In this document: piece by piece, positions 34,538 to 63,116 of the stretch
How positions within the stretch are numbered: position 1 is the first letter of the stretch
How the letters are laid out: the number at the start of each line of letters is the position of its first letter
NCBI GenBank assembly: GCA_964057225.1
Contig: OZ059900.1
Location: 26,598,001 to 26,662,000 of the forward strand
From: Auanema rhodensis
Lineage: Eukaryota; Animalia; Nematoda
Reading direction: 5' to 3'
DNA: 64,000 nucleotides
Made by a program: the position numbers and the translations under genes
The notes under the pieces: model-generated
The model's input: the letters and a program-made list of their open reading frames with translations, nothing else
Database searches by the model: none
Told to the model about the DNA's origin: nothing

Positions 34538-34583
34538 TGCATGTAGATATAGAAATAACTAGCCTAAGCCTGAGCCTAAGCCT
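34538..34583 (+). repeat. Left arm of long-range inverted repeat: 24-bp cap + (GCCTAA)n
   Basis: tgcatgtagatatagaaataacta-gcctaa-gcctga-gcctaa-gcct is the reverse complement of 63071-63116 with 1 mismatch in 46. Confidence 0.9.
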
Positions 34584-34809: not shown

Positions 34810-35230
34810 CAATTTTCATTGAGTTGAGGCTTAGATATTGATCTTTGAGCTTATGCTTACGCTCGTCCTCCATTTCTGGTAAAGAATCCATCGCCTTGTT
34901 CAAGTTGTCGTGACTTCAAAGGCTAAACAGATAAGGAAACTCCGGATACAGTTCACGTCTCAAAGATCAGTCGTTATACGCACATGTAATACCTTTCACA
35001 CCTCCACTGAATATAAAATTCAAAAGTTTCTTTAAGTTCGGGGTTCATCACCACATAAAGGTAATAATCATTTTTGGAATCAAATTTGATCAAGGGGGGA
35101 CCAAGAGATTCTCTATCGAGGGCATCGGTTACATCTTTCAACTTAATTTTATAAAAAATTTCACTTCTCAACCCCAAGTTGAATAACAGGAACATGCAAA
35201 ACAAAATATCACATATACGTTTCTATGTAA
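34810..35230 (-). pseudogene. Tyrosine recombinase paralog fragment (Box I, catalytic Lys region), in-frame stop
   Basis: CMFLLFNLGLRSEIFYKI...GPPLIKFDSKN...YVVMNPEL, then after a short intron RELYPEFPYLFSL*SHDNLNKAMD. Clearly homologous to 37318-37721, with the same intron position. Confidence 0.8.
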
Positions 35231-36330: not shown

Positions 36331-38652
36331 GCACTGGTACATATCTGCAGGAGAGATTTGTAGAGAGAGATCAAGCTAGAATTGTTGCTGAAACTGAAGC
36401 TTCCACTGCTCCAACCATGGTTGTTGAAGCTACGGTTGAAGGTCGTGTTCTGACACATTTAGTTAAGTTCCCCTCATTTTTTTAATGTTAAATCAATATA
36501 AAATTTAGAGTGGTGTCACATACAAACGACGTATGGCTCAATGTAAAATTCTTCCGGAGTTGTCGTATATATATATTGTATATCTTTCTGATCACCAATC
36601 ACATGAATATCTCCGATTGCTCCATGAATTAGACGATGGATTCCCCGAAAATCACATGAAGAAACAAATGTACACCGTTGAAGACTACAGAGTTAGTTTA
36701 TTCTTCCTATTTCACTATATAATCCTCCTTTCATAGAGACAAGGACATGCTCGTGTTAAAACATCGAGTTTTATCAGTTTTTCCTCACTCCTGTACTATT
36801 GCATGAGATACAAGAAAATAAAAGATGTTACTTTCGAAGATTTGTTAGAGGTAGTTTATTCAGATAGAGATTTCTATTCCAATACGGCAATACAACTCTA
36901 CCATTGCAGTCGACTTTGAGGTTTATACACGTCGTTGAAAATCTCACAAATTTTACCGAAAGGCATTCAGTACTCCATTTCACTAAAGATTTATCTAGGG
37001 CTTTAAACATTCTGGATTCCACCTTCCTCTCCAACGCTGCATTTATGAGTTTGACTAAAGTCATTAAAAGAATAAGGAAAATTGTTGAACCGGTAATTCA
37101 CCAAGCACTAGTTATCAAAATTCTTCAACTTTGAAGGCCTGAATAAAGAAAAAACTTTATCGAAAATGGCTACCACGCTCCCTACGTTTTATATGCTTTA
37201 TAGGAAATTCCGATGTTTTGCCCATCCTCGTCTCCAGAATTTTATTTCGACCTATGAAGAAACAAGCTCTGAAAACGTAATGCTATTTTTTTCTTAATCT
37301 TGAAGTTTTATTTTCAGGAAAAAAAAATTATGCTCCGAGAAGCGTCCGTCATGCTTTGTATGTTTCTCCTGTACAATTTAGGGCAGCGCAGTGAGATTTT
37401 TTATAAAATCCGCATGGATACCGCTGAAGAAGCTTTGTTTTTGGAATCTAATGATTCCTCTGGTCCTCCTCTCCTGACTTTCAATTCTAAAAATGGTGAC
37501 CCACTTTATGTTGTTGTTAACCCTGAGCTGCTCCCGTACTATCGATTCTATTGGGAAAAGAGGTTAAAGTTACCATAAAGTTAATCTAAGCTTTTCTTCA
37601 GGCGCCTCATGTATCCATCCAACACATATTTATTTTCCAATTCACCTAGTGACAATCTAAATAAAGCGATAGATGCTTTTCCCGCTCTCGACAACATCTT
37701 TAGGAATACCATGAACGTGAGGTAAACGTTAATCACATTTTTCTGTAATGACTTAAAAAACCTCTAAAAAAATTCAGAAGAGCCTATGTGTTTGCTATCG
37801 ACGCATTCAATCCTCAAGATGAGGCCAACCGAAAGCTCTTATCTCAATGTCACGCACTCACACAAGGTCACTCCCTGCAAGTGAGAAATCTCCTCGTATT
37901 TTTCTATAATTTCCTTTATTTTGCAGACTCGCATGAAGCATTACAGCTACTTCACCAAGAAGAGCGCGTATCTGTCATTCTCTCATTCCCTCGATTTAAT
38001 GGACCGTGATCATGAACAGGAGAACATCAGCAGCTTGATGAAAAGAGTTAATAGGAAGAGAAGCTACACCGTAATGACTGATGAGGAAGGGAGTGGTGGT
38101 GAAGACAAGGTGGAGGAGCCGGAAAAAATGACTCTGACCGAGAACTTGCTCGATACTGTGAGGTGCATCATCTGTTTGGAAGTACGAGATAGCATGGAAA
38201 GATCGATACCTTGTGGGCATAGTACTTGCACCACGTGCAGTTATCAGATAATCCAGACCTTCCGGAAGGAAACTCTTCGATGATAAGATGCGCAACAGTA
38301 ACTATATTTATCTTTGAATAACACTATCGTTACATTTCAGTGTCGCGTCAGGTCCGACGGATTCATGATTGACTTCCATCACAATACCCTAGTTTTTTTG
38401 GAAGCTTTGAAAGAGAAGTTTGATTTCGATGTAATTCCCTCTTCTAAAACCCATAATGAATTGATAAATTTTTTCGCTCACCCAATCATTGAAAGACCTC
38501 CCCCCCCACCCACGAATAACCTCTGGCCTCCTTTTATCCGCACTAACCCCTCCCGCCCCCCGTTACAACGTATAGATTCTTTTGATGAAGAAATAGTTAA
38601 CGACTCCCAAGATATAACACTTCCCCCTGAAGTTTATACCATTGACGACTAG
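36331..38652 (+). CDS. Intron-containing tyrosine recombinase with C-terminal C3HC4 RING finger and Pro-rich tail (probably disrupted)
   Basis: Spliced exons 37318-37562, 37602-37721, 37778-37880 and 37927 onward join in frame to give LYNLGQRSEI (Arg-I), SKN (Lys), YLFS, TMNVRRAY (Arg-II), TQGHS (His) and TRMKHY (Tyr), then CIIC..PCGHSTCTTC and CATC. The 5' start is uncertain. Apparent frameshifts near 37137 and 38275. Confidence 0.8.
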
Positions 38653-39351
38653 ACTAATCCCCATTGACGACTAGACTAATCCAACTAACTTTTCTGAATA
38701 ATGCATTTCTTGTTTTTTTTTATTATAAATGTTTTATTATTGCTTGAAGTTTTAGGTCTTTTCCTTTTATTTTTCTTCCCGGCTATATATTGTTTGATAT
38801 TTTTAGCGAAGCTCTATTGTTATGTATGCATATTGTTTGAAATTCCATTTTTTTTGTTTTTTCGAAACTTTTATCCTGTTATGTATGTTTTAATAAATAA
38901 ATATTTTTAAAGTTGTTATACAGTTTTTTACAGTTGTAGTAGAGTTATGGGTGACATCATCGAGAGTCGAGGGGGGTCTGAGAACTCATTTCTTGTAGAG
39001 TTGTGGGTTTGAGAACTCATTTCTTGTAGAGTTCAGATGGCCCCACATGTGTACAAACTCACTTATTGTAGAGAAATCAAAAAGAGAGCCCAACTTTTTT
39101 TAAACACTACAGAGAGTGAGTTCCACAAAATGTGGGTCCTGACTCAATATTATATTGAGTACCGTGGGTCGTGGGTCAAAAACTTCCTTTTCGTACCCGT
39201 TTTTGTTATAACTCTACAAGGAATGAGTTCCACTGGTTTTGGGAATAAAAATTGTGGGTCATTCATATTGACCCACACCAAAAATATCAATGATAGCCCT
39301 TATCAAAAGAACTCTATTTGTAGAGTTTCAGCTAAGTTGGGTCATGTTTGA

Positions 39352-39509
39352 ATATGAGATCTATGACTAAGCATATGACTAAGTCTAAGCATGAGATCTA
39401 TGACTAAGCATATGACTAAGTCTAAGCATGAGATCTATGACTAAGCATATGACTAAGTCTAAGCATGAGATATATGACTAAGCATATGACTAAGTCTAAG
39501 CATAAGATC
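39352..39509. repeat. 37-bp telomere-like minisatellite, left part (~4 units)
   Basis: Unit tgagatctatgactaagcatatgactaagtctaagca. Confidence 0.97.
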
Positions 39510-40442
39510 AGTAGAGAGCCGTGCAAAATTTACTAACCACGCCCCCAAACAGCTGTCAAAAACATACATTTGGGGGCGTCAGCTGCTAAAAACATACTTT
39601 TGGGGCGCGTCAGCTGTCAAAAACATATTTTTGAGCGTCAGCTGTTAAAATCATATTTTGGGATCATGGTTCATGGATTTTCCTTTTTTAAATTTAAAAA
39701 TCATGATTTAAAGCATGATTAAAATTTTTTTTTTTAAATCAAATTTAAATATGCTTTTTCAAATGTACTTTAAAAATCATGATTTATAGCATGATTTTTT
39801 TAAAAATTAAATTTTAAATTTGTTTTTTCAAATGTATGTATATGTTTTTAATTATTTTTAAATATATTAAGTGAAAATAAAAATTATAAATTTTAAATAT
39901 ATAAATTTGTTTTTAAATTTTATTTATTTATTTATTTATTATATTTATTAATAATATTTGTTTACTTTTTGTTTATTTTTTATTGTATTGTGTTTGTACT
40001 TTTTTATTTGTATTTTAAAGAACAATAAAATTTTTGCATGTATATCGTTTTGTTCACCGTACTTGTTATGGGTAATTCAATGGAACACATATCAAAAGTT
40101 AATTCGATAAGAACGATATGAAATACAAAATTTAATGGAACACATATCGAAGATTAATTCGATAAGAACGATATGAAATACCAAAATTTAATGGAACACA
40201 TATCGAAGGTTAATTCGATAAGAACGACATTAAATTATTAATTTTTGAAATTACAAATTGTTATTAATTATATTTATTCTAACAAGTAAAAGTTTCAAAT
40301 TAAAAGAAAAGATTAGTTTTAAACTTTATCTTACTAATATAACAATACAATAACTAAATAGAGTACACATTGAAGGTAAATACAATATATATACAATATA
40401 CAAGATTAACAAACAGTTGCGCTGACCTCAACGCCACGCATA
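39510..40442 (+). repeat. Maverick left TIR (~930 bp)
   Basis: Reverse complement of 54074-55081 from agtagagagccgtgcaaaatttactaaccacg to gttgcgctgacctcaa, with substitutions and indels. Confidence 0.93.
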
Positions 40443-41077
40443 TCGATGGTTAATAAACACTAATAACTGCACTGTGGGGGTTTAAATATAGTATAATCAT
40501 TTTAACATTTCAAATGTTTTAGTTTCGTAATATAATCATTAGTAAATATTCAAGAATGAAATATTTTATTTTGAAATATTCACATATAAAACGTTGGCAG
40601 TCATATGTTTTGTGCTACAATATGGGTGTAAAAGTATACTATAAATAATATATGAGCTATTAAGCAAAGTTTAAAAAGCCTAAATGTTTTACAGAGATGG
40701 CTGTTGTTTATGGCACAAACGGTAAACAATAATGTTTAAAGAGATGTAAAAACTAATTAATATGCAGATTGTTTACAGGTTCAGAGTGCGCCAACTGCTG
40801 GCAACTGTCGACGAGATGAGTATATCTGCATAAATATGCTGTAAAATCTAATTAATAAAAGAATTTCATCAGCAAACTTGATTGTAACACAATGGGTTGT
40901 ACTTTACAAAAATCTTTGTATAAAAGGTTGGCAATTTTGCTACATTTACATTTCAGCTCTGCCAACTATCCGAGGATCCGACGTTTCACCATCTCCTGCC
41001 ACTCTTTGCCAATCGCCATAGACTGCTCCTCTCTGCAAGTTTGCCTTATATTTTAGAAAGTTGGATCTTTAGCGGAA

Positions 41078-41662
41078 ATGAAGCGTGCTGTACTTGCTGA
41101 TGTGACAAATGTTGTGCGCAAATCGCCTGAACCTGAAGTACCACGACCACCCACACCAGCTCCAAATTTCACAAGTTTTGGTATGAACCTTAACTTGTAT
41201 TTTTTAAATCTTTAATTTAGATTCACCAATAAAGCAGATGGAGATTCTGAGAGAGAGCACTCCACCAAGGAGTGTATTAATGAGACCAATTTGTCTCTGC
41301 AAAACTTGTAGGGAATCATTGCAGGTTATAGACGAGTATCACTGTTTCAGCCTCTGTATAAAGTGTAGAGGAAGGAATGATGCGTTGGGTCTTTTGAAGG
41401 AGTTTCGTCACTATAAGCCCGAAAACTTTTCTATTAATGTAAGCTTGCATATTTATTTATTTTCAATTTTATCATTTTTTAGATGCGCTCTTATAACACC
41501 ATGACGTGCAAGCAATTGTTGAACAATATGGGCTATATTGTTATATATGCAGATGAGGCTACTATAAAGACTTTTGGTTATAAGCAGAATGTATTCTACT
41601 TTAAACTAAGTCCAGAAGCACTCAACCTGAACATGTTTATCCGCTTTGATCCTTCATTTTGA
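41078..41662 (+). CDS. Maverick accessory protein, 3 exons (41078-41180, 41221-41438, 41483-41662), 166 aa, N-terminal D-box-like motif and Cys pairs
   Basis: GT-AG introns give an uninterrupted frame MKRAVLADVTNVVRKSPEPEVPRPPTP...DSPIK...STPPR...CLCKTC...CIKC...FDPSF*. Confidence 0.7.
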
Positions 41663-41955
41663 CTACAACAAGCACAAATAGTACAATTGGCGTTTTATTC
41701 TTGTTTTGTTATGTGGCATTTTTATATTCTCAGCCGTAACATTTTTTTTCCAGCACTTGCGAATATCCATCAATGGCTCATCAATTGAGGACGAATGATC
41801 AACCAACTGGTAAGAATTTGAAAATTTGAATAGTCTACACTTTTTTTTTGCAGGTTGAATTGTTGTTTGTATTTTGCTGGTTTTTTATTGTTACATTATG
41901 CGATATATCAAATAAATCATTTATTATAATTACAATTGTTCATAACATTGAAAAG

Positions 41956-43074
41956 TTATACATTTAAATTTTCTGCATCTATCCATTCATTAAAGTTGTC
42001 GGGATATCCACTTCATTTTACAAATACTTGACGTTTACCGCTTCGAGTACGCTCTTTTAAAACTTTTTCTATATAGTACTGGTTGCTTTTATTAGTAGCC
42101 AAGACAAGTTCAGGTTCGTAGAATATTCCCTTTATACGTTCACCATTATAATCTACAAGTTTATACACGGTTGGGTTTCCGGTTACAACCTCATCAATTG
42201 TGAATAGCTCCATTGTATATCCAGACTCGTAGCTTTTTTCAAAAGTACGCCTATTTTTGCTTATGCGAACAGTATCACCAATTTTAAAGCGGCTTTTAAC
42301 AGCTGTTGCATATTCTTCAATGAATATATTTGCTTTAACATCAATGGACCGCATTTTTATGGAGCGGTTATAAGATTTGTTTATTCCTTCAACCAAATCA
42401 TCTAGGATATCAATCCAACGATGATTATTCTTGTAATAGAGATATTTCATCATGCGGGTTTTTAAAGTTCTATTTGCTTGCTCCACCATTGCAGCCTTTT
42501 GTGGTGAACTTGTAGATCCGTGCAGTATGGCAAACTTTTTGAATAGTTTTTCACAATGACTATTATAAAACTCTGTGCCATTATCAGTAATCAACTGAAT
42601 TGGTATAAAATTCTTGAATAAACTTTCAAATGCATTAGCAACCTCTATACCACCTTTAGTTTTCAGAGGCCTAACATATAACATGCGTGTATAAACATCA
42701 ATCATGGTCAACATGTAAGCATAGCCGTCGTTTAATTTTTTATATTTTTGCATATCAACCAAATCTGCTTGCACTGTTAGAAATCGACCACATCCTCTAG
42801 TCTTTCTAGTCTGCATACGCATTCTGGTTGGTTTAAGCCGTGTAAAAGTTTCAGAATCTTGCAAAAAATCATCAACTTGTACCTTTGAAATGCCATGTTT
42901 TCGTGCTTGCGATAATAAATTCTTGGCTGATGTATATGAAGCTGGATGTTTTATAACGTAATAAATGCTCGCCAAAATATCATTTCCATAATCTAATGTA
43001 GAACCTTTTACGACCTTGGCCATTCTGTGAGTCTCCTTCTTGTGGTGTGTAATATGATTCGGCGGCAGTATCAA
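41956..43074 (-). pseudogene. Maverick retroviral-like (rve) integrase with C-terminal chromodomain broken by TGA
   Basis: QADLVDM / ITDNGTEF / MVEQANRTLK DDE triad. Reading through the stop at 42013-42015 gives YYIEKVL...VFVK*SGYPDNFNEWIDAENL, a chromodomain with W replaced by a stop. Confidence 0.92.
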
Positions 43075-43696
43075 AAGTCTTTGACCTTTTACTTTTGAGT
43101 GTACGAACCGGTGATGGTGAATATCGAATAACAGCTTTACGATGACGAGGCGTTCTAGGTAATATAGTAGAGTCCAAGTCTGTAACAGCCGGTTCAGCTC
43201 TAGTTACAACGTCAACTGGATCATTGTCAGCCGACTCTCTTCTAGTTTGTTTCTTGTTAGAACTAGGTACGCCTTTACTGGCTAAAAACTTTGACAAGAC
43301 TGAAAATCCATTGGGCTCCGTTTTTGTTTTATCCAATACAAAATCTAAAATTTTTGTAATATCGGTGTTTGGTACAGCCTCATTATTAATCACAAGTTGA
43401 TTACTCTTGTTTGTGCGCACCTCTGGAAATTTATCCCACAAATTGTTATACTTTCTTGGCAACTTGTATTCGGGCAATAGAGGTGGATCAGCATTTTCCA
43501 CTTGTACTGATATGGGCGCATCTATACTTTCTCTATAGTTTTTGAGACGAGCAATCAAGTCTTCGTATAGTTCAGCCTTTTTATAGTCGGGTATAGCTTT
43601 ATTTTCTCGTAAAAGCTTGAGCTCTGCATCAAACTTGTCTATACTAATTGTTTCCTCGTCGACAGGAATTAGTCGATATTTATGGTTGAGCTTCAT
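42980..43696 (-). CDS. Maverick hypothetical (core-like) protein, 238 aa
   Basis: Open ORF overlapping its neighbours in operon-like fashion; basic C-terminus with QNGQG. Confidence 0.75.
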   Translation of the reverse strand: MKLNHKYRLIPVDEETISIDKFDAELKLLRENKAIPDYKKAELYEDLIARLKNYRESIDAPISVQVENADPPLLPEYKLPRKYNNLWDKFPEVRTNKSNQLVINNEAVPNTDITKILDFVLDKTKTEPNGFSVLSKFLASKGVPSSNKKQTRRESADNDPVDVVTRAEPAVTDLDSTILPRTPRHRKAVIRYSPSPVRTLKSKRSKTFDTAAESYYTPQEGDSQNGQGRKRFYIRLWK

Positions 43697-44001
43697 GATT
43701 TAAAACCAAAATAGGCAATACCACATGTAACTATTGTTTTTAATTGTTTGTGTGAAAGCGTTGCCAATAATGATTTAGCCTTTTCCGGTGTGTGTATCAA
43801 AGCTATTTGACGTAATAATGAAGATATGGGCAAGAGGGTTTTATATTCCTTGTTAGTTAAAAGAAAATTATTATTTTTCACAATATTAAATACAATTTCA
43901 ACAATAGTTTCAATTTGTGCAAAAGAAAATGAGGAAACAGAACAAGGAGTTTTGGCGCAAGAAGACAAAAAGTTGAAATTTGACAAAATACGACCACTCA
44001 T
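43693..44001 (-). CDS. Small conserved Polinton protein, 102 aa
   Basis: The QIETIVEIVFNIVKNN..LT..EYKTL..LLRQIA pattern resembles the small Polinton ORF that follows the ATPase. ATGA overlap with the next gene. Confidence 0.65.
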   Translation of the reverse strand: MSGRILSNFNFLSSCAKTPCSVSSFSFAQIETIVEIVFNIVKNNNFLLTNKEYKTLLPISSLLRQIALIHTPEKAKSLLATLSHKQLKTIVTCGIAYFGFKS

Positions 44002-44013
44002 TGAACAAGCACT

Positions 44014-44659
44014 TTAAACACTAAACACATTTCTGGCAACATAAACAATAGGGTTCTCCGCTGTTATATCAGATAGTATATGCCGCTTCTCACTTGTTAA
44101 AGGATGATTGTCAATCAGTAAATGACTATAGGGAGTAGACATTGCATCATCATACGCCTCTAGAGCATTTTTGAAACGTGGCCCAAATAATTGCTGCAGA
44201 CAATTACGTATTTGTAATATATCTGAATGACTTTTCATCAGTATTATATATGTACTATTGATTCGACTGGTCCTGTCCAGTTGAAATGCCGCTTGCACAA
44301 GATTAAACACTGACCAAATTCCAGTGATGAGCCCATACTGTAAAAATGTTGTTGAGTAATTCTTTTGCTGCTTTATTCGATGAAAAAAAGTTCATCAAAT
44401 CATCCAGCACTAGTATAGTATTTACTCCCTTTTGTTCTTTTATCAAATCAGGATCAGGAGGCCCTTGAATATTTATTAAACGCTCATCATTTATTGGTAC
44501 ACCTGATGACCCACATTGACTGAACCAGAATATTCTATCAATGGGGACGTTGAAAAACTTTTCAGTATTTTCACATATGTGCTTTATGGGGGTTGTTTTA
44601 CCGCATTGGGTAGCACCTATTACAGTTGTCTGACTGGGTAGTTTGAACCTAAAATGCAA
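44014..44659 (-). pseudogene. A32/FtsK-HerA-type packaging ATPase, frameshifted
   Basis: Walker A GATQCGKT and Walker B ILVLDD in the first ORF; LVQ and SRINSTY motifs in the second. Frameshift at ~44310; start also appears damaged. Confidence 0.92.
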
Positions 44660-44705
44660 ATGATTTCATTTGCAATAGTGTACACGTATCAAGTGGTGGT
44701 TTGTC

Positions 44706-45563
44706 ATGGATGATTTTTACATTACTCTTCCATCATCAGTTGACTCTGAAAAAAGTAATACATCATCAGTGTTTCTTACCAGATTACCTGAAACACTAAG
44801 GCTACGCAATAATAGATATTGCATTGGGCTGACAGACATCATTTTTCCTTGTTCTATATTAAATGTTCAAAAAGATTTATCTTATACACTACGTTTTTCC
44901 AATAGAAAATTTATTCTACACTTGCCTAAAGGCAACTATGCAAATGGTGATAAAATAATACGCGGAATCAATGCTGGAACAGAATTATTTATCGCCAACA
45001 ATACAAAGCCTCTTGGAGCTGAGGAAGAAGCACGTATAAAAAGTTTAATAGATAAAGATGAAGATGTAAAAAAATGGTATAATAATCGCCAGGCTGAGGC
45101 TAAGCTAGTGGAGGAAATGCTCGCAGACGCCACATTTCAGTTTAACAAAACATTGCAGCGCATAGAGTTTGTAACAAGCAAGCGACTATTAATGAATGCA
45201 ACGCTTGGTGATGATTTTGCATATTTTCTTGGTTTTGAAAATAAAAACATCAACGATACAATAATAGCCAGGCGTCCCATTGATTTTTCAAATAACATTA
45301 ATACAATGTATATATATTGTGATATTGTAGAATATCCCATTCTTGGTAATGTGAAAGCTAATTTACTTGCATGTTTACCTGTACCACCTCCTACTGAATT
45401 TGGTAAAATGATTGCCAAAACATTTAATCCTATTCGTTATGTACCAATCACTAGACAAACACTCGATACCATACGTATTGAAATTTTAGATGAATTTGGT
45501 CGTCCTATGCAATTTAATTATGGTTCTACAGTTGTTACATTGCATGTTAAAAATATGAAATAA
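44706..45563 (+). CDS. Minor capsid protein (penton, single jelly roll), 285 aa
   Basis: Polinton penton pattern FYITLPS..NT.S.F.T.LP, YIYCDIV, YVP..DTIRIEI.DE.G, VVTLH. Confidence 0.85.
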   Translation: MDDFYITLPSSVDSEKSNTSSVFLTRLPETLRLRNNRYCIGLTDIIFPCSILNVQKDLSYTLRFSNRKFILHLPKGNYANGDKIIRGINAGTELFIANNTKPLGAEEEARIKSLIDKDEDVKKWYNNRQAEAKLVEEMLADATFQFNKTLQRIEFVTSKRLLMNATLGDDFAYFLGFENKNINDTIIARRPIDFSNNINTMYIYCDIVEYPILGNVKANLLACLPVPPPTEFGKMIAKTFNPIRYVPITRQTLDTIRIEILDEFGRPMQFNYGSTVVTLHVKNMK

Positions 45564-45568
45564 ACGTT

Positions 45569-46063
45569 TTATTCAACAGTTATACAATACCACATTTTTA
45601 TTTTCGAAGGTTTAAAAGATAGTTTAGGGCAGTTTTTTTTGTCGCTCGGCTCGTGTTGTGAATGTTCTCCGTCATTATTGCTGCGGCATCTTTTTGATTG
45701 GGTTGAATGTACAAACTCCTCAGCTTTTTCAAAGGGTTTGCTGGTATCATTTCCATCACCATCTTCACCATTCGTTCCATTATTATTATGAATACGCCGA
45801 ATATGACGCTCACAATTGAATCTTGTTCCAAAAGTTTCACTACAATGAGGGCACAAACGTCTACGAACACCATCCAAATGTCCATATTTTTGAATAAAAT
45901 CAGCATTGCTGATATAATTGTTACATATGGGTTGAATCCCTGCATGTCTTTTCAAAACGTGATCACTAAAATGCTTGGTTGAATAAAATATTTCCTTGCA
46001 TGTACCACAATATTTGTTACATAAAAGTTCCATTAGAGGAAAATGAAAAACGACCACACGCAA
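45569..46063 (-). CDS. Two-finger C2H2 zinc-finger protein
   Basis: CGTCKEIFYSTKHFSDHVLKRH and CPHCSETFGTRFNCERHIRRIH. Confidence 0.7.
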   Translation of the reverse strand: MRVVVFHFPLMELLCNKYCGTCKEIFYSTKHFSDHVLKRHAGIQPICNNYISNADFIQKYGHLDGVRRRLCPHCSETFGTRFNCERHIRRIHNNNGTNGEDGDGNDTSKPFEKAEEFVHSTQSKRCRSNNDGEHSQHEPSDKKNCPKLSFKPSKIKMWYCITVE

Positions 46064-46286
46064 TCAACCCACTTTTATATAATGAGCAATAATATGACTA
46101 GTGTTGTACAAAAGCCCAATCCCAATGCTATACCTTTAATAAATGGCACTGAAATACATTTCAACATTCTCCTGTATAAAGGCGCTGGTTTAGATTGCTC
46201 CAACGTGTATTTGACACATAATTCACAGTGACAAGGAATATTCATAACTGATCACGTAATGTAGCAGGTTATTAATGACAAATTTC

Positions 46287-46829
46287 TTATATAGTAGCCA
46301 ATTTATAGTCGAATACTTTATGCATAAAAGCTTTAATAAAGAAATCATCATTTTTCAATAGTTTAAAAAATGAACAAATGCTTTCAAATGAATTACCAGC
46401 CGACAACATTAGTATTACAAATACCACATAGCCACCACAAGTGTATTCAATTAAACGTTGTGGTTTGCAAGTATTAATTTTTACCTTTTTATATTTGGCC
46501 AGATAATTTTGAATGTACTTGTTCATTTTATATCCCAAGCTACAGAAAAAATAGGCTTGCTTGTTACGGACAAAGATGACCTGCCAATGTGTGCCTGGCT
46601 TATCATGTGTGTCAGTATTTACGACAAGTGCAAAGTTTTTACGACGCGTTTTGGGTAGAGGATCAGCGCTATATACACCGAGGAATAGTTTCCAAGTGCT
46701 GGAGACAGATTGCAACAGTGATACTATTTCAGACAAATACATTTTAGTTGAATGATCTAGTGTAACTTTTGTATTGCGCGCGTGCGGTTCGATATGCCGC
46801 ACCTCTTTTTGGATGTCAACTCTATTCAA
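46287..46829 (-). CDS. Adenain-like cysteine maturation protease
   Basis: FLGVYSAD, VVNTD..PGTHW (His), PQ....TCG (oxyanion Gln, catalytic Cys). True start probably at MYLSEI. Confidence 0.9.
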   Translation of the reverse strand: MNRVDIQKEVRHIEPHARNTKVTLDHSTKMYLSEIVSLLQSVSSTWKLFLGVYSADPLPKTRRKNFALVVNTDTHDKPGTHWQVIFVRNKQAYFFCSLGYKMNKYIQNYLAKYKKVKINTCKPQRLIEYTCGGYVVFVILMLSAGNSFESICSFFKLLKNDDFFIKAFMHKVFDYKLATI

Positions 46830-47189
46830 TGGACAACACTTTTAAATCAACAAATGGGTGGCGCCCCATTTAGCGGAATGATGTTTCAACGTGGAATGCA
46901 GAGGGGTCATGGTTTGGGTGGTATTTTGGCAACTTTGGCATCATTTCTGCCACGCATCATTCAATCACCTATAGCCCAAAATCTCATCAATGCCGGAAGA
47001 AACGCTGTATCCAGTGCTGTAAGCAATAGTCCAGTTGTAAATTCACCTCTTGGCGGACAGTTGCTGAAAACTGGTAATGAAATTGTCAATGGGGTGCTGA
47101 AAGGCGATAATATCAAGGAAACTCTTAAAACAGCCGGCCGCCAAGCTATACGAGATCTTACCGGCTTGGGCAAACGGCGACGACGTTAA
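46794..47189 (+). CDS. Gly-rich conserved Polinton core protein
   Basis: QMGG..FSG..FQRG..QRGHGLGGIL motif, amphipathic helices, basic tail GKRRRR, located directly upstream of MCP. Confidence 0.75.
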   Translation: MPHLFLDVNSIQWTTLLNQQMGGAPFSGMMFQRGMQRGHGLGGILATLASFLPRIIQSPIAQNLINAGRNAVSSAVSNSPVVNSPLGGQLLKTGNEIVNGVLKGDNIKETLKTAGRQAIRDLTGLGKRRRR

Positions 47190-47246
47190 ACCACAAAACC
47201 TCATAAGCGGTTGTGCATCACTCGGGAGCGGTCGTTTCAGATTTAA

Positions 47247-48581
47247 ATGGCTAAATTGATAGATTCAAAATCAGCACAAGCCCTTTTACCTAATATCAAC
47301 TATGGTGATATACCAGCGTCGGCATTAGGTGTAGAGTCTACTCGTACTGTACAAGTCCCTTTGAAAAATACTTTTCTTCCTCAAGGACCATGGGAATTTG
47401 TTATAGCTCAAAATTCCAAATCATTCCTCAATCTGAAAAGATGTTGGTTGAATGTAAAATTTAAAATTGTAACCACAAACGGTGATCCAGTACCAGACAA
47501 CCTTGTTTTTGCACCATGTCAACAATTTGCTGCCAGTTTAATACATTCGTATCATTTGAAAATTGGCGATGTTAGCGTGTATGACTCTACCGTGAATCAT
47601 GCCTATAAAACATATATCGAGAATATTTTAATGTATAGCAACGATGTTAAAGAGAGCAAACTTGCCATATCAGGCTATTATGCTGATAGATATATAGATA
47701 ATGCATCCAATGCTGGATTTAGAACGCGTCAAACGCTTGTAAAAAATGGCATATTATGTGAGATGGCTGCTCCCGTCAGTATCGACCTATTTAATCAAGA
47801 GCGACTGTTTGTAAACTATTCAAAAATGGAGCTAACTGCATATCCAAACCGTGATAACTTTTTAATTGACACTCTAGGCTGGAATAATGAAAACAAGGAT
47901 ACTACATTAAAGGAGGAGTTTCCAAATTTGAAAGTAGATATCAGCGGTGTACATTTGCTCATTCAAGAGTTTGATCTAAACGCTGGATTAGCTATGGCTA
48001 TAGAAGATAAACTCGCAAAGGATCGAATACACTACCCCATGACATCAGTGAAAATGCGCTCTTATTTCATAGAAGGAGGCCGCTTGGATTCACCTAATAA
48101 TATATTATTCACGTCTCATACACCAAAACGTGTTGTAGTAGGTCTTGTTGGCGCACACGCCTATAATGGTACTTTTAAACATTCGCCATTCAACTTTAAA
48201 CCGTTTGATTTGAAAAATATATACTTGACGCTCAACAATAGGGTAACACCTACCCGTCCTTATAATTTCGAATGGCGATCTTCCTATGCCACAGCATATA
48301 TTGACATGCTCGAAGGTTTGGGACTTGGTCGTACAGATTCATCCAATGGTATTACACCAGCAATGTATAAAGCTGGTTTCACATTTTTTGTATTTGATAT
48401 TTCTCCTACTGTGCATTCGTCAGAGTTATTTGATGTTATACGACAAGGTAATGTAGCCTTGAAATTGGAATTTGGTCAACAAACGCCGCAAGAGGGCTTA
48501 TATGCAATTGTTTATGCAGAGTATGACTCTATTCTTTCAATTGACAACAATCGTGCTCCATATATTGATACCAGTTTGTAA
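47247..48581 (+). CDS. Major capsid protein (double jelly roll), 444 aa, intact
   Basis: Size, position and Polinton MCP motifs: AYKTYIE.IL.Y, DLFNQER, PKRVVVGLV..AYNG...SPFNF, GFTFFVFDISP, G.VALKLEF. Confidence 0.9.
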   Translation: MAKLIDSKSAQALLPNINYGDIPASALGVESTRTVQVPLKNTFLPQGPWEFVIAQNSKSFLNLKRCWLNVKFKIVTTNGDPVPDNLVFAPCQQFAASLIHSYHLKIGDVSVYDSTVNHAYKTYIENILMYSNDVKESKLAISGYYADRYIDNASNAGFRTRQTLVKNGILCEMAAPVSIDLFNQERLFVNYSKMELTAYPNRDNFLIDTLGWNNENKDTTLKEEFPNLKVDISGVHLLIQEFDLNAGLAMAIEDKLAKDRIHYPMTSVKMRSYFIEGGRLDSPNNILFTSHTPKRVVVGLVGAHAYNGTFKHSPFNFKPFDLKNIYLTLNNRVTPTRPYNFEWRSSYATAYIDMLEGLGLGRTDSSNGITPAMYKAGFTFFVFDISPTVHSSELFDVIRQGNVALKLEFGQQTPQEGLYAIVYAEYDSILSIDNNRAPYIDTSL

Positions 48582-48718
48582 TGTATGTAATAAATTCTTT
48601 AAAAGATTTAAGAATAAAGTTTATTAATACAACTATTTTTAAAAATAAATACATGTACAATAATAAAATTTTATAAATACAAATATATACAAGATAAAAA
48701 TTTATAAATTCAAATATG

Positions 48719-51700
48719 TTATTCACAATAACCGTAGGGTAAAGTACTATAATCTTGTAGATAACAAAGTTTATCCATTACGACTTTAGTACTTTTTGTC
48801 ATATCCATTGTGGATATGGCACCGAGTTGCCTCTTTAACAAGGTTGTATTGGTTTTTAAAACCAATTTCTCTCCATCCATAACGAGTTCGCGAACCAGTC
48901 GCTCCATACTTTCAAAGTTTACCACTGATGCTGCCGTGTGGTCCAACGTCTGAAAATTATAAAATTATTTGAAAAGTCAAAGCTCGTACTTACCACTCCC
49001 TTTGCCTTTGTTACATACTTTACATCACCAGCTGCATTTACAAGTTTATAACTATAAACTTTTGCTGCTGGTGATACAAACTTGGTCATTGACCAACCAT
49101 CGGGTATTTCAGAGGTTAGTTTACCTAACCATTCACCCTTCATATCCTCAATTGGATCTGGCTCATCCAGGCACCTTTGATAAATTAGTGAATCCGTGTC
49201 TAAATAATGTAAGTTTAAATTGAATACAAAGTATAAAATTACCTGTATACACCAAATTCTTTCCAATTTTCTCCATTGCCTTATACAATAGTAGCCTTGC
49301 ATGAGCGGTTGTATAGGCCGCAATAGCTACATTTGTAAAAGGCGGTGGTGCCAAATGTGAATCCTCTGGTACTGTTGTGCAGTACGCAACATTATCCACA
49401 ATTTTGAACCCAGTGAGTTCCCTTGCAGGATCAGTAATGATCCTACCAATTTCTGGGTCCTCAACACCAATAATCTTGGTTTGGGCTTTATCTGGTCTTT
49501 GACCCATTTTACCCCAGACACTATTAGCAAATTTGTAATGTATTGTTTTAAAAAGTTTACAAACCTATTTAGCTGCAGTTTGGCAATGCTACGCATGGCA
49601 GCATTCTTCTCAATTTTATTGCTCTCCAGAGCAACACCAGTGTTCTCCTCGTGCTCTTGGAAATATATCACCTGTAAAATTCTATTTAATGTGATACTTT
49701 TATTAAAACATACCTTTTCTCCCTCTGTCATGTTTGGCTTTGGCCAGCCCGACGCCTCTTGTTTAATTTTTATGTACTTTTGTACAAACTCTTTTAACAG
49801 GCCGCCTTGTTGCCATTCTTCCCAGTGCCACACCTCATGCACATGAAGCACTTTATAGCCACGTTGTATGGCACACTCGAGCTCAACATGTGTTACGGTT
49901 AGATGCAGCTTTCGAGCATTTACATCATTTTGGTGCTCACAAGTAACATTTTTACTTTTGACTGCACAAGTGCGGCAGTTTGTAAAAATTAGTTTACCGC
50001 CAATACGTGTGCATAATACAGGGTACAGCAAATTTGTGGGTGCAAGCACGTCACATTTTACTAGACCCTTGTATGGGCAGCATGCCTCAAAGCTTTTGAA
50101 ACCCTCAGTAATCACTTTGGGATTACCTACAGGGTAGTAGGCATCAAAAGCGGTGACATATGGATATAGTGAACAAAAGTCCACATACTCGAGCGAGTAT
50201 CTATCCGAAGCTTGTGCCAAAAGCTTATATGTCTGGGTGCGGCCACCGGTAAAGGCATCTCTAGGTGCCAAGCGTGTAACAACATTTGTTTCACGCATAA
50301 ATTTCGCCATTTGTTCATTGGCCGAAATTTGTGCATTAATTTCGTGCTCCCACACTGTGGTAACACTAATGCCTTGGCTTTGAATTGCTTCAAGCCTTTT
50401 CATGATTTTATCATAAACCTAAATTTTTCAAATTAAAATGATTAAAAATTATCAATTACCTCTTCCATTGTTTCACCATTTCTGCCTGGTGCTATAGCGC
50501 TCTTGTTGGTGCACTTGGGGCAACCATGGTAAATGCAACCATTAATCTACAAAAATTTGTATTTTTTACATTTATTACAAATTACTCACCTCATAGCCAT
50601 GATTGGCAACGGGGTCATAAGCATCGAGCAGAAAGCGATGGCCATCTACTCTCACTGCAAATTCACCACCATTAAGCTTATGCATTAATGGGCGGCCCAA
50701 TCCTTGTTCTAGCCATTTTATATACTTTATGACTATTATACTCTGCTTTTGACCGGCATAATAACCAGTCTCGGGCAGAATACCCACTTGGTTCTCTTTA
50801 ATGTGGTTCATTTTCAACTGTAATATACTAGTTTTGAAAATGCTTGTATTTTAAAAAACTTGCCTAGAATAAAGAGAAACTGGCAAATGTCATACATTGT
50901 ATGACAGGGTTCCAGCCAGTGGTGGCGATTGCCAACTTCATGTAAACTTTCATACAGTTGGTTAAAATACGGACATCTGTCCTACAATATTCCAAAAGCT
51001 CTTCATCAAAATCAAACGCTCTTTGATTACGCTCTTCATACCAAATATCGAATGAAGCTAGGTCTTCTGCTTTCATTCTAGCAGTACAATAGTACTGTTT
51101 TGGTGGTAAAGATGGCAACACTTTGCCATAATTTATTGGATGATTAAAGAGGTAAGGAAACTGTCCTTTACTCATATCAGGTACACCAAATGCCTTGGGT
51201 AACGCTGATAAGGGTAAAGGCACTAATAAATAACTATCTTTAAAATATAAATAATTAAATTTTTGACCTCTTAAAGGCTTGACAACCATGCTTATAATCT
51301 TGGTCCTATTGAAAATTGGATCAGGATATATACCACGGTTTATCAGCCTAGACACCAAGAAATGTATGTCAAAGCGTGAACCATTATGCGCAATCAAAAT
51401 TGCATTATCATTCTCAACAGAGTTGAGTAACCAATCAAGGAAACGATCTGTTACAGACCATTCACTATCACCTTGTTGGTACCCAAAATGGCCCTCCTTG
51501 GTTGTGCATTTTTCACATGAGCCATATTGGGCCATTGTTCATCTGCATATTCATGAACATTTGTACCGTTTTTTAACACAACCGTTTCAAAGTCATAGAA
51601 TATAATCTTAAACAAGTAAGCATTATACTTGTAAAGATGTTAAATACAAACCTTGTATTTTTCTTGCCTCTTTTTTAACTGATCCTTCATCTTGTCGTCA

Positions 51701-53877
51701 GGTGGTACCCAACAACAAGAATGATCTTCAGGCGTTGTTTGCCCACACTTTTTGCAAAATTTCTCATTGCAATTGTGCGGTCTATCAGCACGTACTCTGT
51801 GATAATGATCACAGTTTTCACATGTCTGAATTTAGTCTTGTTAAATTTTATATATATTTTTTAAATTACCTTAAACATTCGACATGTTTTTCTAATATGC
51901 CTGTCAAAGCATTGACGAGTTTCAAACAAAACTCTACAACTATCACATCTTATGCTACTTTCAACCACATTTTCCATCGAATTACATTTCAAGGTGTGGC
52001 ATTTCTTACACTTGGCTTTACATCTATGCAACACTGTTTTGTAAGATAATTTACAGTATTGGCATATAATACCATCAAAAAGCTGTGATCTACTACAAGT
52101 TGTAATACAGTCATAATGATTATTTCGGTAGCCTAGTGTTACCACTTTGCTAGCCGTTTCATTAAAGATACGCTGAATAGCGTACATATGCTGTCCAGGT
52201 GGCCTAGCGTATACTACAAACTTATAGTCTGTATTACAACTTGCAATAATATTTAAATGGTTTAAATTATAATTTGGTAAATGTACAGAAATACCACACC
52301 TATTTAATAAATTGATATGATGTGGTTGATTTGGCAACAAGATGTAGTTGCGACGAAGATTTTGTATCCTCCGCTTTTCAACAACATCTTCTGCTGCCTC
52401 TTCATCGGCTTTCCACATTCCCACAACTGCTGCTCTAGCCAGGCAATGTGTATCAGTGTTCTCAATTGTGCCAGGTATTTTGAGTTCGGCATCAAAATAG
52501 AAACCAACTCTACCTTCACCAGGCATCAGGCTTGGCTGCACTGGTCTCTCATCAAACACATACATTTCAATATTCATTGCCTGGCTAATTACAGCTTCTC
52601 GCTTTGATTGATGTACCTTGCTGATGGCATTCATGATGGCAACGCCATCCAAATGCTCCCTTCTACGGAAATCCATAAATATGGATCCCTTTTCAAAGGA
52701 TGGGTGCTCTATTGATAAACAAAATAGCGCTTTTTGTTTATCTGGCACACCACTTTCAGCAAGGCACCGATCAAGAAACTCATTAAATAGCCGCGGCATG
52801 ACAACATGCATTGGCTCATTAATGGTTTCCAAATGTGGGAACGTGAGCGATCTAACGACCACGTTGGTAAACCGACCAGTGCGATTTATGCGTCGGTGTG
52901 ACCACTATAATACACACTTTTTATAATGGTTATACGCTTTTAATTTAAATATAAATAATTTTTGTTTATAAGTTTTAATAAATTTACTTTTCTTTAAATT
53001 ATTTTTATTGATGTTTAAAAATAAATGGCATTTGATTTTTAAATATAAAGTTTTTTTTTTATCAACTTTGAAAAAACTTTTATAAACATTTGTTAATGTT
53101 TAAAAATAAATGAAAAGGTCAAGATTGTGTTTTATTATTTTACTAGTTCAAAATGTTTGAAATTTTTATAATTTGTAAGAATCCAAAATTAGTTGAAAGA
53201 AAGATATATAGTGAGATGAAATGTAAAGATTTTAAAATGAATGCTGTTCAAAAGAATGAATATATAAATTTCAAAATACTTGCAATTTGTCTGATAAAAG
53301 ATATAGATTGTGATGAAATGTAAAAATGAGAGAGAGAGAGAATTTTATGAATGCAATTGAAAAAGAGAAATAAGTTTCAAAATGTTTTCAAAATATGCAA
53401 CTGGAGCAAGAGATAATTTCATGTTTCAAAAGATATATTATCAAATGATATGTAAATAAAAGATCGCACCTCTATTTTACAGACATCGTTGAAAGCCGCT
53501 CCATGTCCGACTTGCCCTCCACTGGTTGATGGGGTAGCGGGATCCCATTCTCTTAAAAAGAAAAAACTAAATGTTATAATTTTTAATATCGCTTACTCAT
53601 CACTGTCATCCAAGGTTATTACTTCAATAACCCTTGATGATGAGGGCCCACTGTTAAAAGTGGGTGATGTGGGCTCACAGAGCTCGATCCCACCAGCCTC
53701 GGTAAACTTTATACGTTTACTAAAAAAAAAATATATAGATTCAAAATTGTGTTAAATTACCTGAGCTGATTAATCTCTTCATAATCGAAACCCAACTCTT
53801 TACATAAACGTTTATAACTAAAAAAAGAAAAAGTTTACAAACAAATAATCAAAAAGACACAACCTATTAGCAGCCAT
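48719..53877 (-). pseudogene. Protein-primed family B DNA polymerase (pPolB), 14 exons, with frameshift and nonsense lesion
   Basis: Hand splicing gives ExoI FYDFET, ExoII AHNGSRFD, ExoIII YCRTDV, an inserted nuclease-like segment (YE/INGCIYHGC), motif A DFCSLYP, motif B KLQLNSVWGK and motif C YTDTDS. Frameshift ~51540; TAG at 50864-50866. Confidence 0.93.
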
Positions 53878-54073
53878 TGTACCTTGATATAATGAATACA
53901 TCAGTCTACACATTGCTGTTGGCATTGTAATTTGTTATGTAACATGGATTTGGGTACAGCTGTCAAAACTAGCAGTTGCGATAAACTTTAAAATAAATAA
54001 GCATATTGAATACATCTGTTTTTATTGTCCCCGTCGGATTAATTTTTGTTATTAGTTCTTATTAAATTAACTT

Positions 54074-55081
54074 TATGCGTTTCATTGAGGTCAGCGCAAC
54101 TGTTTGTTAATCCCGTCGTATTTACCTTCAATGTGTGTTCTATAGAGTTTTTGTGGTTATATTAGTAAAATAAAGTTTAAAACTAATCTTTTATTATAAT
54201 TTGAAACCTTTACTTGTTACAATAAATATAATTAATAACAATTCACAATTTCAAAAATTAATAATTTAATGTCGTTCTCATCGAATTAACCTTCGATATG
54301 TGTTCCATTAAATTTTGTATTTCATATCGTTCTTATCGAATCAACCTTCGATATGTGTTCCATTATTTTTTGTATTTCATATGGTTCTTATCGAATTAAC
54401 TTTCGATATGTGTTCCATTGAATTACCCATAACAAGTACGGTGAACAAAATTATCTACATGCAAAAAATTTATTGTTCTTTAAAAATACAAATGAAATAG
54501 TACAAACACAATACAATAAAAAATAAACAAAATAAGTAAACAAACATTATTAATAAATATAATAAAGAAATAAAGAAATAAATAAAATTTAAAAACAAAT
54601 TTATATATTTAAAATTTAAATATAATTTATATATATAAAATTTAAATATAATTTAAATATTTAAAGTTTAAATATAATTTATATATATAAAATTTATTAT
54701 AATTTAAATATTTAAAGTTTAAATATATTTTATATATATAAAATTTAAATATAATTTAAATATTTAAAATTAAGATTTTTATTTTTACTTAATATATTTA
54801 AAAATAATTAAAAATATATACATACATTTGAAAAAACAAATTTAAAATTTGATTTAAAAAAAAAAATTTTAATCATGCTTTAAATCATGACTTTTAAATT
54901 TAAAAAAGGAAAATCCATGAACCATGTTCCCGAAATATGATTTTAACAGCTGACGCTCAAAAATATGTTTTTGACAGCTGACGCGCCCCAAAAGTATATT
55001 TTTAGCAGCTGACGCCCCCAAAAGTATGTTTTTGATAGCTGTTTGGGGGCGTGGTTAGTAAATTTTGCACGGCTCTCTACT
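54074..55081 (-). repeat. Maverick right TIR (~1000 bp)
   Basis: Ends ...aaattttgcacggctctctact. AT-rich internal expansion at ~54600-54780. Confidence 0.93.
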
Positions 55082-58013: not shown

Positions 58014-58299
58014 TTATAAATTTAAATCAAACACCTGTGCAAACCTAGGCTTTTCTTGTTCATTAGTAGTTAGTTATAGTTAGTTAAAAAAAAAGTTACC
58101 TAAAGACGTTTACGATTGGGGGGGGGGTCACTAAAGGCGGCCCTAATTAATGGTCCTATAGAGAAATTAGCGTAGGCGTCATAAAAAAAAATTATCATTG
58201 ATGTTAATATCTTAATTATCTTATTAGCATGTGTTTTATTTTTATTTCATGTTTTTTTCAAGTGTAATGAAAAAAATAAGAAGAATATAATAAAAAGAT

Positions 58300-63053: not shown

Positions 63054-63116
63054 GGCTAAGGCTTAGGCTTAGGCTTAGGCTTAGGCTTAGGCTAGTTATT
63101 TCTATATCTACATGCA
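63054..63116 (+). repeat. Right arm of long-range inverted repeat: (TTAGGC)n + 24-bp cap
   Basis: ggctaaggc(ttaggc)5 tagttatttctatatctacatgca. Confidence 0.9.

Follow-up and report, generated by a model that had tools for sequence, protein, structure and literature searches.

A decayed gene of Auanema rhodensis pairs a tyrosine recombinase-like motif set with a C3HC4 RING finger

Does a small, intron-rich gene of the nematode Auanema rhodensis encode a protein in which a tyrosine recombinase (YR) is fused to a RING finger, and is the gene intact? The question arises from a stretch of 64,000 nucleotides (GenBank assembly GCA_964057225.1, contig OZ059900.1, positions 26,598,001 to 26,662,000 of the forward strand), referred to here as the window and numbered from its first letter. 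A preliminary description, made from the sequence before any database search, had proposed that four consecutive exons within 36331-38652 join in frame to give the catalytic positions of a YR in order, followed by a C3HC4 RING, and that this copy may be a pseudogene. To our knowledge, the pairing of a YR-hallmark domain with a RING has not been described before. The explanation to which we incline, with some reserve, is that the window holds a pseudogene copy of a small, lineage-restricted family whose intact protein would consist of a helical N-terminus, a YR-derived domain, a RING and a proline-rich tail. By exon arithmetic such a protein would be about 600 amino acids (aa) long, with the motif series R..K..RR..GHS..Y in the YR-derived domain and an acidic or coiled linker between this domain and the C3HC4 RING.

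The gene lies on the plus strand at 36351-38652 and is composed of ten exons, named here Ea to Ej, and nine introns. All introns are of the GT-AG type, measure 39-59 nt and carry nematode-type tttcag acceptors; every junction but one is in phase. A profile search was run with exon Ef and a paralogous piece from the window against 1.84 billion protein representatives. Just two short open reading frame (ORF) products (P0001 and P0002) matched, both from Logan assemblies. Their sources, contigs of 1.2-1.7 kb, are L001 (ERR11476990) and L002; L002 and L003 (ERR11477541) are one and the same gene, and at least two paralogues of the family are present in one Logan run. Length-limited word searches with Ef, Ei and exon X5 of L003 returned nothing or just the query's own cluster, and family patterns scanned against IMG/VR and the JGI metagenome contigs brought up no relative. 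The paralogue in the window (34844-35222, minus strand) is truncated, diverged and inverted, standing head-to-head with the gene. It consists of Ef-like and Eg-like pieces only (tblastn identities of 51% over 74 aa and 39% over 38 aa, respectively), is 52% identical in the alignment and retains the R and K of the motif set. The Eh, Ei and RING parts of this paralogue were looked for and not found. One and a half diverged copies of the gene are present in the window.

The first coding exon, Ea (36351-36461), is tentative. It is bounded by an acceptor ctgcag/G and a donor /gttaagtt (the slash marks the splice site), its first ATG is at 36417 in a frame open from 36294, and it joins Eb in phase 0; neither homologue covers it, L001 beginning inside Eb. 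Eb (36509-36691) has phase-0 GT-AG junctions and is 41% identical over 59 aa to L001 21-185. Ec (36737-36850), also with phase-0 junctions, matches L003 2-70 with 43% identity over 23 aa, and Ed (36910-37092) shares 43% identity with L001 414-572 over 53 aa; both terminate in VEP directly before the gt of the donor. Ee (37137-37276, ATG at 37166) stands directly before the catalytic-like domain, is 57% identical over 35 aa to L001 647-751 and joins Ef in phase 0. These five exons upstream of Ef are an addition to the earlier four-exon account, which corresponds to Ef-Ei, as are the inverted paralogue and a frame break at the Ed/Ee junction. Ef (37318-37562) carries the Box I-like motif and the Lys of a beta-hairpin (R 37387, E 37393, K 37489), and four family members are 43-52% identical to it. 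Eg (37602-37721; 54% identity to L001 1094-1216) contains a strand-like YLFS motif and ends in TMNV followed by a split Arg codon. Eh (37778-37880) provides the RR pair, a helix RAYVFAIDAF and GHS. The Tyr motif, an acidic linker and RING ligands 1-6 are encoded in Ei (37927-38297), in which ligand 7 is frame-shifted and 37927-38280 forms a single ORF. Ej (38341-38652), behind an acceptor catttcag/TGT, supplies the eighth RING Cys at 38341 and the Pro-rich tail, and is closed by a TAG at 38650. A perfect 22-bp tandem duplication (CCATTGACGACTAGACTAATCC, twice) at 38639-38682 spans this stop codon.

Exons Ef to Ei join in frame as had been proposed, two of the joins being made via split Arg codons. 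In L001, the exons Eb to Eg and the start of Eh follow one another as in the window, with 40-57% identity, and L003 contains Ec to Ej, the whole model being in frame with canonical splice sites. Homologous exons match with E of 1e-10 to 1e-19 per exon, and their order is kept on independent contigs. Exon X4 of L003 corresponds to Ef+Eg, L001 bridges Eg and Eh with the intron-free reading MNIRRTYVFAIDAF, and X5 of L003, which reads DIRRSYVRAIEAY...TQGHS at Eh, bridges Eh and Ei. Because a natural uninterrupted reading bridges it in a relative, each Ef-Ei junction of the window is confirmed. The intron arrangement itself differs between members: Ef, Eg, Eh and Ei are separate exons in the window, Eg+Eh are fused in L001, and Ef+Eg as well as Eh+Ei are fused in L003, one or two of the window introns being absent from each relative. 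This shows loss or gain of introns within the small family. X5 of L003, a single intron-free exon of 180 codons, encodes GHS..Y, then a linker for which a long helix is predicted, and finally the RING. As L003 keeps the arrangement of the window, the fusion of the recombinase-like domain and the RING is a conserved family feature and not an accident of the locus. For L003 1260-1390 (X5 residues ~98-148), AlphaFold predicts a single long Lys/Glu-rich helix before the RING, with pLDDT up to ~76; it may serve dimerisation as a coiled coil, which is also seen in other RING E3s.

The RING was evaluated by the ligand pattern C-x2-C-x(9-39)-C-x(1-3)-H-x(2-3)-C-x2-C-x(4-48)-C-x2-C together with a Pfam score above the cut-off. 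In the window, the ligands C-x2-C-x12-C-x-H-x2-C-x2-C are found at 38164-38238 in Ei, the Tyr-bearing exon, where the RING had originally been placed; zf-C3HC4 of Pfam recognises them with 23.0 bits (cut-off 21, E 7e-5, profile positions 1-31 of 40). L003 displays all eight ligands in frame, C-x2-C-x12-C-x-H-x2-C-x2-C-x13-C-x2-C across one intron, and reaches 23.5 bits (cut-off 21) with the same profile. Its matches in PDB are the RINGs of IAP, RING2 and BRCA1 (E 0.002-0.02). The last Cys pair of L003 is split by the intron as CPL/C, at the same codon position as CAT/C in the window, and exon X6 of L003 opens with the same Cys. Judged by ligand pattern and profile score, the C3HC4 RING of the window gene family is real. 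In the window copy, ligands 7 and 8 (38289, and 38341 past the intron) are out of frame with ligands 1-6, which agrees with the proposal that the last Cys pair lies across the next intron and in a different frame.

Two frame breaks were found in the window copy. The first (37093-37139) is located at the Ed/Ee junction: a 44-nt intron occupies 37093-37136, the exon starts at 37137, and the homology-supported frame starts at 37139. L001 joins its Ed and Ee counterparts in frame (VVEP/IIQREQLKKKMDTKLPTFY), and its Ee matches the window from 37139 with 48% identity over 46 aa. The second break (38254-38283) is inside the RING, where the frame of 37927 gives way to the frame of 38226 somewhere in 38254-38280, an interval that includes the position near 38275 at which a frameshift had been suspected; the stop TGA is at 38281. 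The intact L003 RING reads through the equivalent place (CTDC..13 aa..CPL/C). Because of these two breaks the window copy is a pseudogene, as had been considered possible, and it is therefore unable to make the full protein.

Does the domain in front of the RING derive from a YR? The residues named from the window alone are all present in the proposed order and places, namely R (LGQRSEI) at 37387, K (SKN) at 37489, RR with the first codon split (37720-21 and 37778) and the second at 37779, H (QGHS) at 37869 and Y (MKHY) at 37942. K stands 34 residues after R, RR 64-65 after K, H 30-31 after RR and Y exactly 9 after H; the last distance is 9 in both members and equals, in the alignment, that of XerD, Cre and lambda Int. 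In 4/4 members R, E and K are unchanged, with only 16/81 positions invariant overall, while RR is retained in 3/3 members and GHS and Y in 2/2, at an overall identity of 30-38%. All catalytic residues predicted from the window alone thus proved invariant in relatives found afterwards, and the chance of that, by rough arithmetic with independence assumed, is about 2 in 1000. The order R, K, R, H/W, Y was found with compatible spacing and with conservation among members. With XerC/XerD, Cre and lambda Int (PF00589) the family shares a Box I of the form h-x-x-G-h-R-x-x-E-h, a beta-hairpin Lys ~34 residues on, an LF-type strand, an Arg at a helix start, G-H-S and a Tyr 9 residues later. It differs from them by a similarity below Pfam/HMMER detection, by M/N/D-x-x-R, by a longer distance from the second Arg (RII) to His, and by the added RING and long N-terminal region.

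Sequence and profile searches were run exon by exon and on the homologue pieces, and the family was compared with YRs using hhalign. The query was a family alignment of natural continuous fragments, in which rows from L003 and L001 bridge the junctions and short Eg rows were aligned separately to the L003 tail. The targets were the catalytic domains of XerC, XerD, FimB, FimE, lambda Int and Cre (6 YRs), or these plus ten diverse phage integrases (16 YRs). The scores were weak, 15.98 against the 6 YRs and 16.06 against the 16. They were reached by 2/525 and 4/537 column shuffles, respectively, or 6/1062 together (empirical P ~0.007). The optimal (Viterbi) local alignment sets the family Box I on the YR Box I, and the posterior (MAC) alignment sets R/K/R/H/Y on XerD R148/K172/R247/H270/Y279. 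The signal is confined to the Box I/Lys half. In the low-confidence model of X4 of L003, the predicted secondary structure follows the expected order of helix, GLR helix, beta hairpin and helix. Order and spacing of the motifs, together with their invariance among homologues, are suggestive of a YR origin and leave the fold unproven; altogether such an origin of the N-terminal domain appears reasonably probable, and the family is not filed here as YR.

A series of results weighs against this reading. No window exon or homologue piece matched a YR family in Pfam, PHROGs or NCBIfam, the RING being the sole match, and phmmer and family-profile searches of PDB with each exon or piece returned no YR chain, only RINGs. 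Modelled with AlphaFold, X4 and X5, the two large natural exons of L003, gave low confidence (pLDDT 40.5 and 57.4, respectively), and Foldseek on the X4 model gave no YR, its best match (E 0.95) being noise. The P-values of hhalign itself are 0.14 (6 YRs) and 0.10 (16 YRs). The Box II half alone scores 8.87, below the shuffle mean of 9.88, and its best match against the 16 YRs is merely the tripeptide GHS on GHS. No member has the first His of HxxR, M, N or D being found in its place (TMNVRR in the window, TMNIRR in L001, PMDIRR in L003); the motif had rightly been called degenerate, as no His stands three residues before either Arg in any of the three. The spacing from RII to His, 30-31 residues vs 22-23 in bacterial YRs, is 7-8 residues longer. 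Finally, the matches in the protein collections that were searched included no spliced transcript of the family, a search for repeats around the gene gave no convincing element termini or target-site duplications, and no near-identical or young copy of the gene was found in the window.

Could the family then be a lineage-specific RING E3 ligase, its N-terminal alpha/beta domain being unrelated to YRs and the resemblance to R/K/RR/GHS/Y arising by chance in a different, though conserved, fold? The family, PDB and structure searches, negative or uninformative for YR, speak for it, as do the HH P of 0.10-0.14 for the family profile, the Box II half with no independent profile signal and the absence of the tetrad's first His. 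We nevertheless regard it as doubtful, since the Box I similarity exceeds ~99.4% of the column shuffles with two different YR profiles, residues named from the window alone are invariant in later-found homologues, and a YR domain is matched both in the 9 residues from His to Tyr and in the co-linear order. Of the divergent YR family with a tethered E3-like domain that had been proposed, the RING and the conserved fusion thus stand; the YR identity is not established, given the missing YR match, the poor models and the weak hhalign scores.

If the domain is YR-derived, to which known group does the family come closest? No reverse transcriptase (RT), RNase H, methyltransferase or other enzyme was found in the flanks of the gene (31.7-39.5 kb). 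The DIRS/Ngaro/PAT elements are likewise eukaryotic elements encoding a YR, and the window gene differs from them by having no adjacent RT, RNase H or methyltransferase and no split or inverted terminal repeats. This class was excluded, in line with the earlier statement that the locus is not DIRS, as the only RT of the window (12450-17105) belongs to a long terminal repeat (LTR) element with its own rve (DDE) integrase. PAT and DIRS are present in nematodes, and no Crypton was identified in the nematodes covered by the same survey (PMC4157794). Cryptons (CryptonA/CryptonI) resemble the family by their eukaryotic YR-type motif set, the lack of RT, introns in the gene, the lack of terminal repeats and a low copy number. 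The family departs from them by adding a RING, by lacking the first His of the R-H-R-Y tetrad and by showing no detectable sequence-profile match. Animal Cryptons have no terminal repeats and no C-terminal domain (PMC3212892). In the DUF3504 genes (ZMYM2-4, QRICH1, KCTD1, WOC) a YR-derived domain is joined with another, unrelated one (MYM zinc fingers, BTB) in an intron-bearing host gene, which is a further likeness; the window family is distinguished by the retained Tyr and second Arg, by RING as the partner and by the lack of a match to Pfam DUF3504 (PF12012), none being found at E up to 1-10 in exons or homologue pieces. With catalytic-type residues kept and a RING added, the family fits neither the animal-Crypton nor the DUF3504 pattern.

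One may also think of a domesticated host gene, in which a YR-derived module serves DNA binding or architecture without strand exchange (cf. DUF3504 in ZMYM, KCTD1 and WOC) and the RING is the working activity. Nine introns, at positions common to members that are 40-50% identical and with gain and loss between them, would point to long residence as a gene. The lack of element termini and young copies and the loss of the tetrad's first His are in keeping with it, and Crypton YR fusions to other domains are known among domesticated genes (PMC3212892). Crypton-derived DUF3504 domains have, however, lost the Tyr and the second Arg (PMC3212892), whereas none of R, K, R, H and Y is missing here, and the Pfam DUF3504 match is missing. 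The family has several copies, and the present one is decayed and lies among transposon and satellite sequence; a mobile or selfish family would account for this equally well, and domestication is judged unlikely. Both a selfish Crypton-like family and an expanding host gene family would accord with the intron positions shared at 40-50% divergence, with several paralogues in each genome and with the decay of a copy among transposons.

Under the favoured explanation, a YR-derived domain fused to a RING, intact, possibly mobile members of the family would bind DNA with their N-terminal helices and the YR-type domain. The latter, if folded as a YR, would cut and rejoin DNA through a 3'-phosphotyrosine link, as is thought for Crypton-type DNA elements. 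The helix before the RING may dimerise the protein. The RING would recruit E2~ubiquitin, and the protein may then attach ubiquitin to itself, to chromatin or to a host factor at the site, in a RAG1-like manner. RAG1 (Transib/ProtoRAG), in which a DNA recombinase and a C3HC4 RING E3 domain are likewise present in one polypeptide, is the only well-known recombinase-RING pairing that we are aware of. Its core is a DDE/RNase H-fold transposase, its RING is N-terminal vs C-terminal in the window family, and there is no sequence relationship between the two. The RING of RAG1 has been discussed earlier (PMC1131882). The strongest form of the proposal, that intact members are active Crypton-like YRs with a built-in RING ubiquitin ligase, and with this the first YR-E3 fusion, the first nematode Crypton-type family and a case of convergence with RAG1, must be considered rather improbable.

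The gene is located between a satellite and a Maverick/Polinton-like virus-like element, in a window with a GC content of ~28-38%. The element (~39354-55523) has inverted terminal repeats of ~1 kb (39508-40467 vs 55083-54048, 82% identity). An rve integrase is encoded at 42013-43074 (minus strand) and a type B polymerase of the protein-primed kind (PF03175) at 49327-50403 (minus strand); more minus-strand ORFs, for which Pfam gave no match, continue to 52862. A capsid-sized ORF occupies 47247-48581 (plus strand), and for several ORFs of the element the Pfam scan gave no match. That the gene is an accessory of this element is highly improbable. The argument in favour is proximity: from the end of the gene it is ~0.7 kb to the 37-bp array (39354) and ~0.85 kb to the left inverted repeat (39508). 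That the gene is a part of the Maverick-like element was nevertheless rejected, as the gene, ending at 38652, lies outside the pair of ~1-kb repeats and the element possesses an rve integrase of its own. The homologue contigs (just 1.2-1.7 kb long) are devoid of Maverick genes, and nothing similar is found past the right end of the element. The idea that there is no gene at all, only chance open frames in AT-rich repeat DNA, could draw on the lack of a single long ORF and on the two frame breaks in the copy, and is practically eliminated by the homologous exons, which match with E between 1e-10 and 1e-19 each, keep their order on independent contigs and in one case give a model fully in frame.

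To the left of the gene, a 168-bp satellite (1-31754, ~188 copies, 77% matches) makes up half of the window and is interrupted by a GC-richer insertion at ~12-17 kb. Within the satellite lies the intact polyprotein ORF of an LTR retrotransposon (12450-17105, plus strand, 1551 aa), with aspartyl protease, RT, RNase H, H2C2 zinc domain and rve integrase. Arrays of a 37-bp tandem repeat flank both ends of the Maverick-like element and recur rightward (39354-39509, 55081-55523, 56122-56651 and 57250-57744). TTAGGC is the telomere unit of nematodes, and interstitial tracts of it are present at 55498-55539, 56626-56667, 57938-58016, 63057-63092 and 34562-34579; 25 12-mer matches to (TTAGGC)n were counted in the window vs 0.13 expected. 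Two identical ORFs of 140 aa (55481-55903 and 56609-57031, minus strand), 1128 bp apart and with no Pfam match, both terminate in a translated TTAGGC tract.

What does the finding mean for the family? If the N-terminal domain is a true YR, site-specific DNA breakage and joining would be linked to ubiquitin signalling in one protein, a linkage otherwise known only from RAG1, which is of the unrelated DDE class. It would then also be a new architecture among the few eukaryotic YR elements, in a phylum in which one nematode survey found no Crypton-type elements (PMC4157794). If the YR resemblance is spurious, the window gene would merely be a decayed copy of a lineage-specific RING gene. With its many tiny exons, a main domain that has no Pfam match and only two relatives among 1.84 billion representatives, the family all but escapes gene finders and databases, and it provides an example of what ORF-based surveys overlook.

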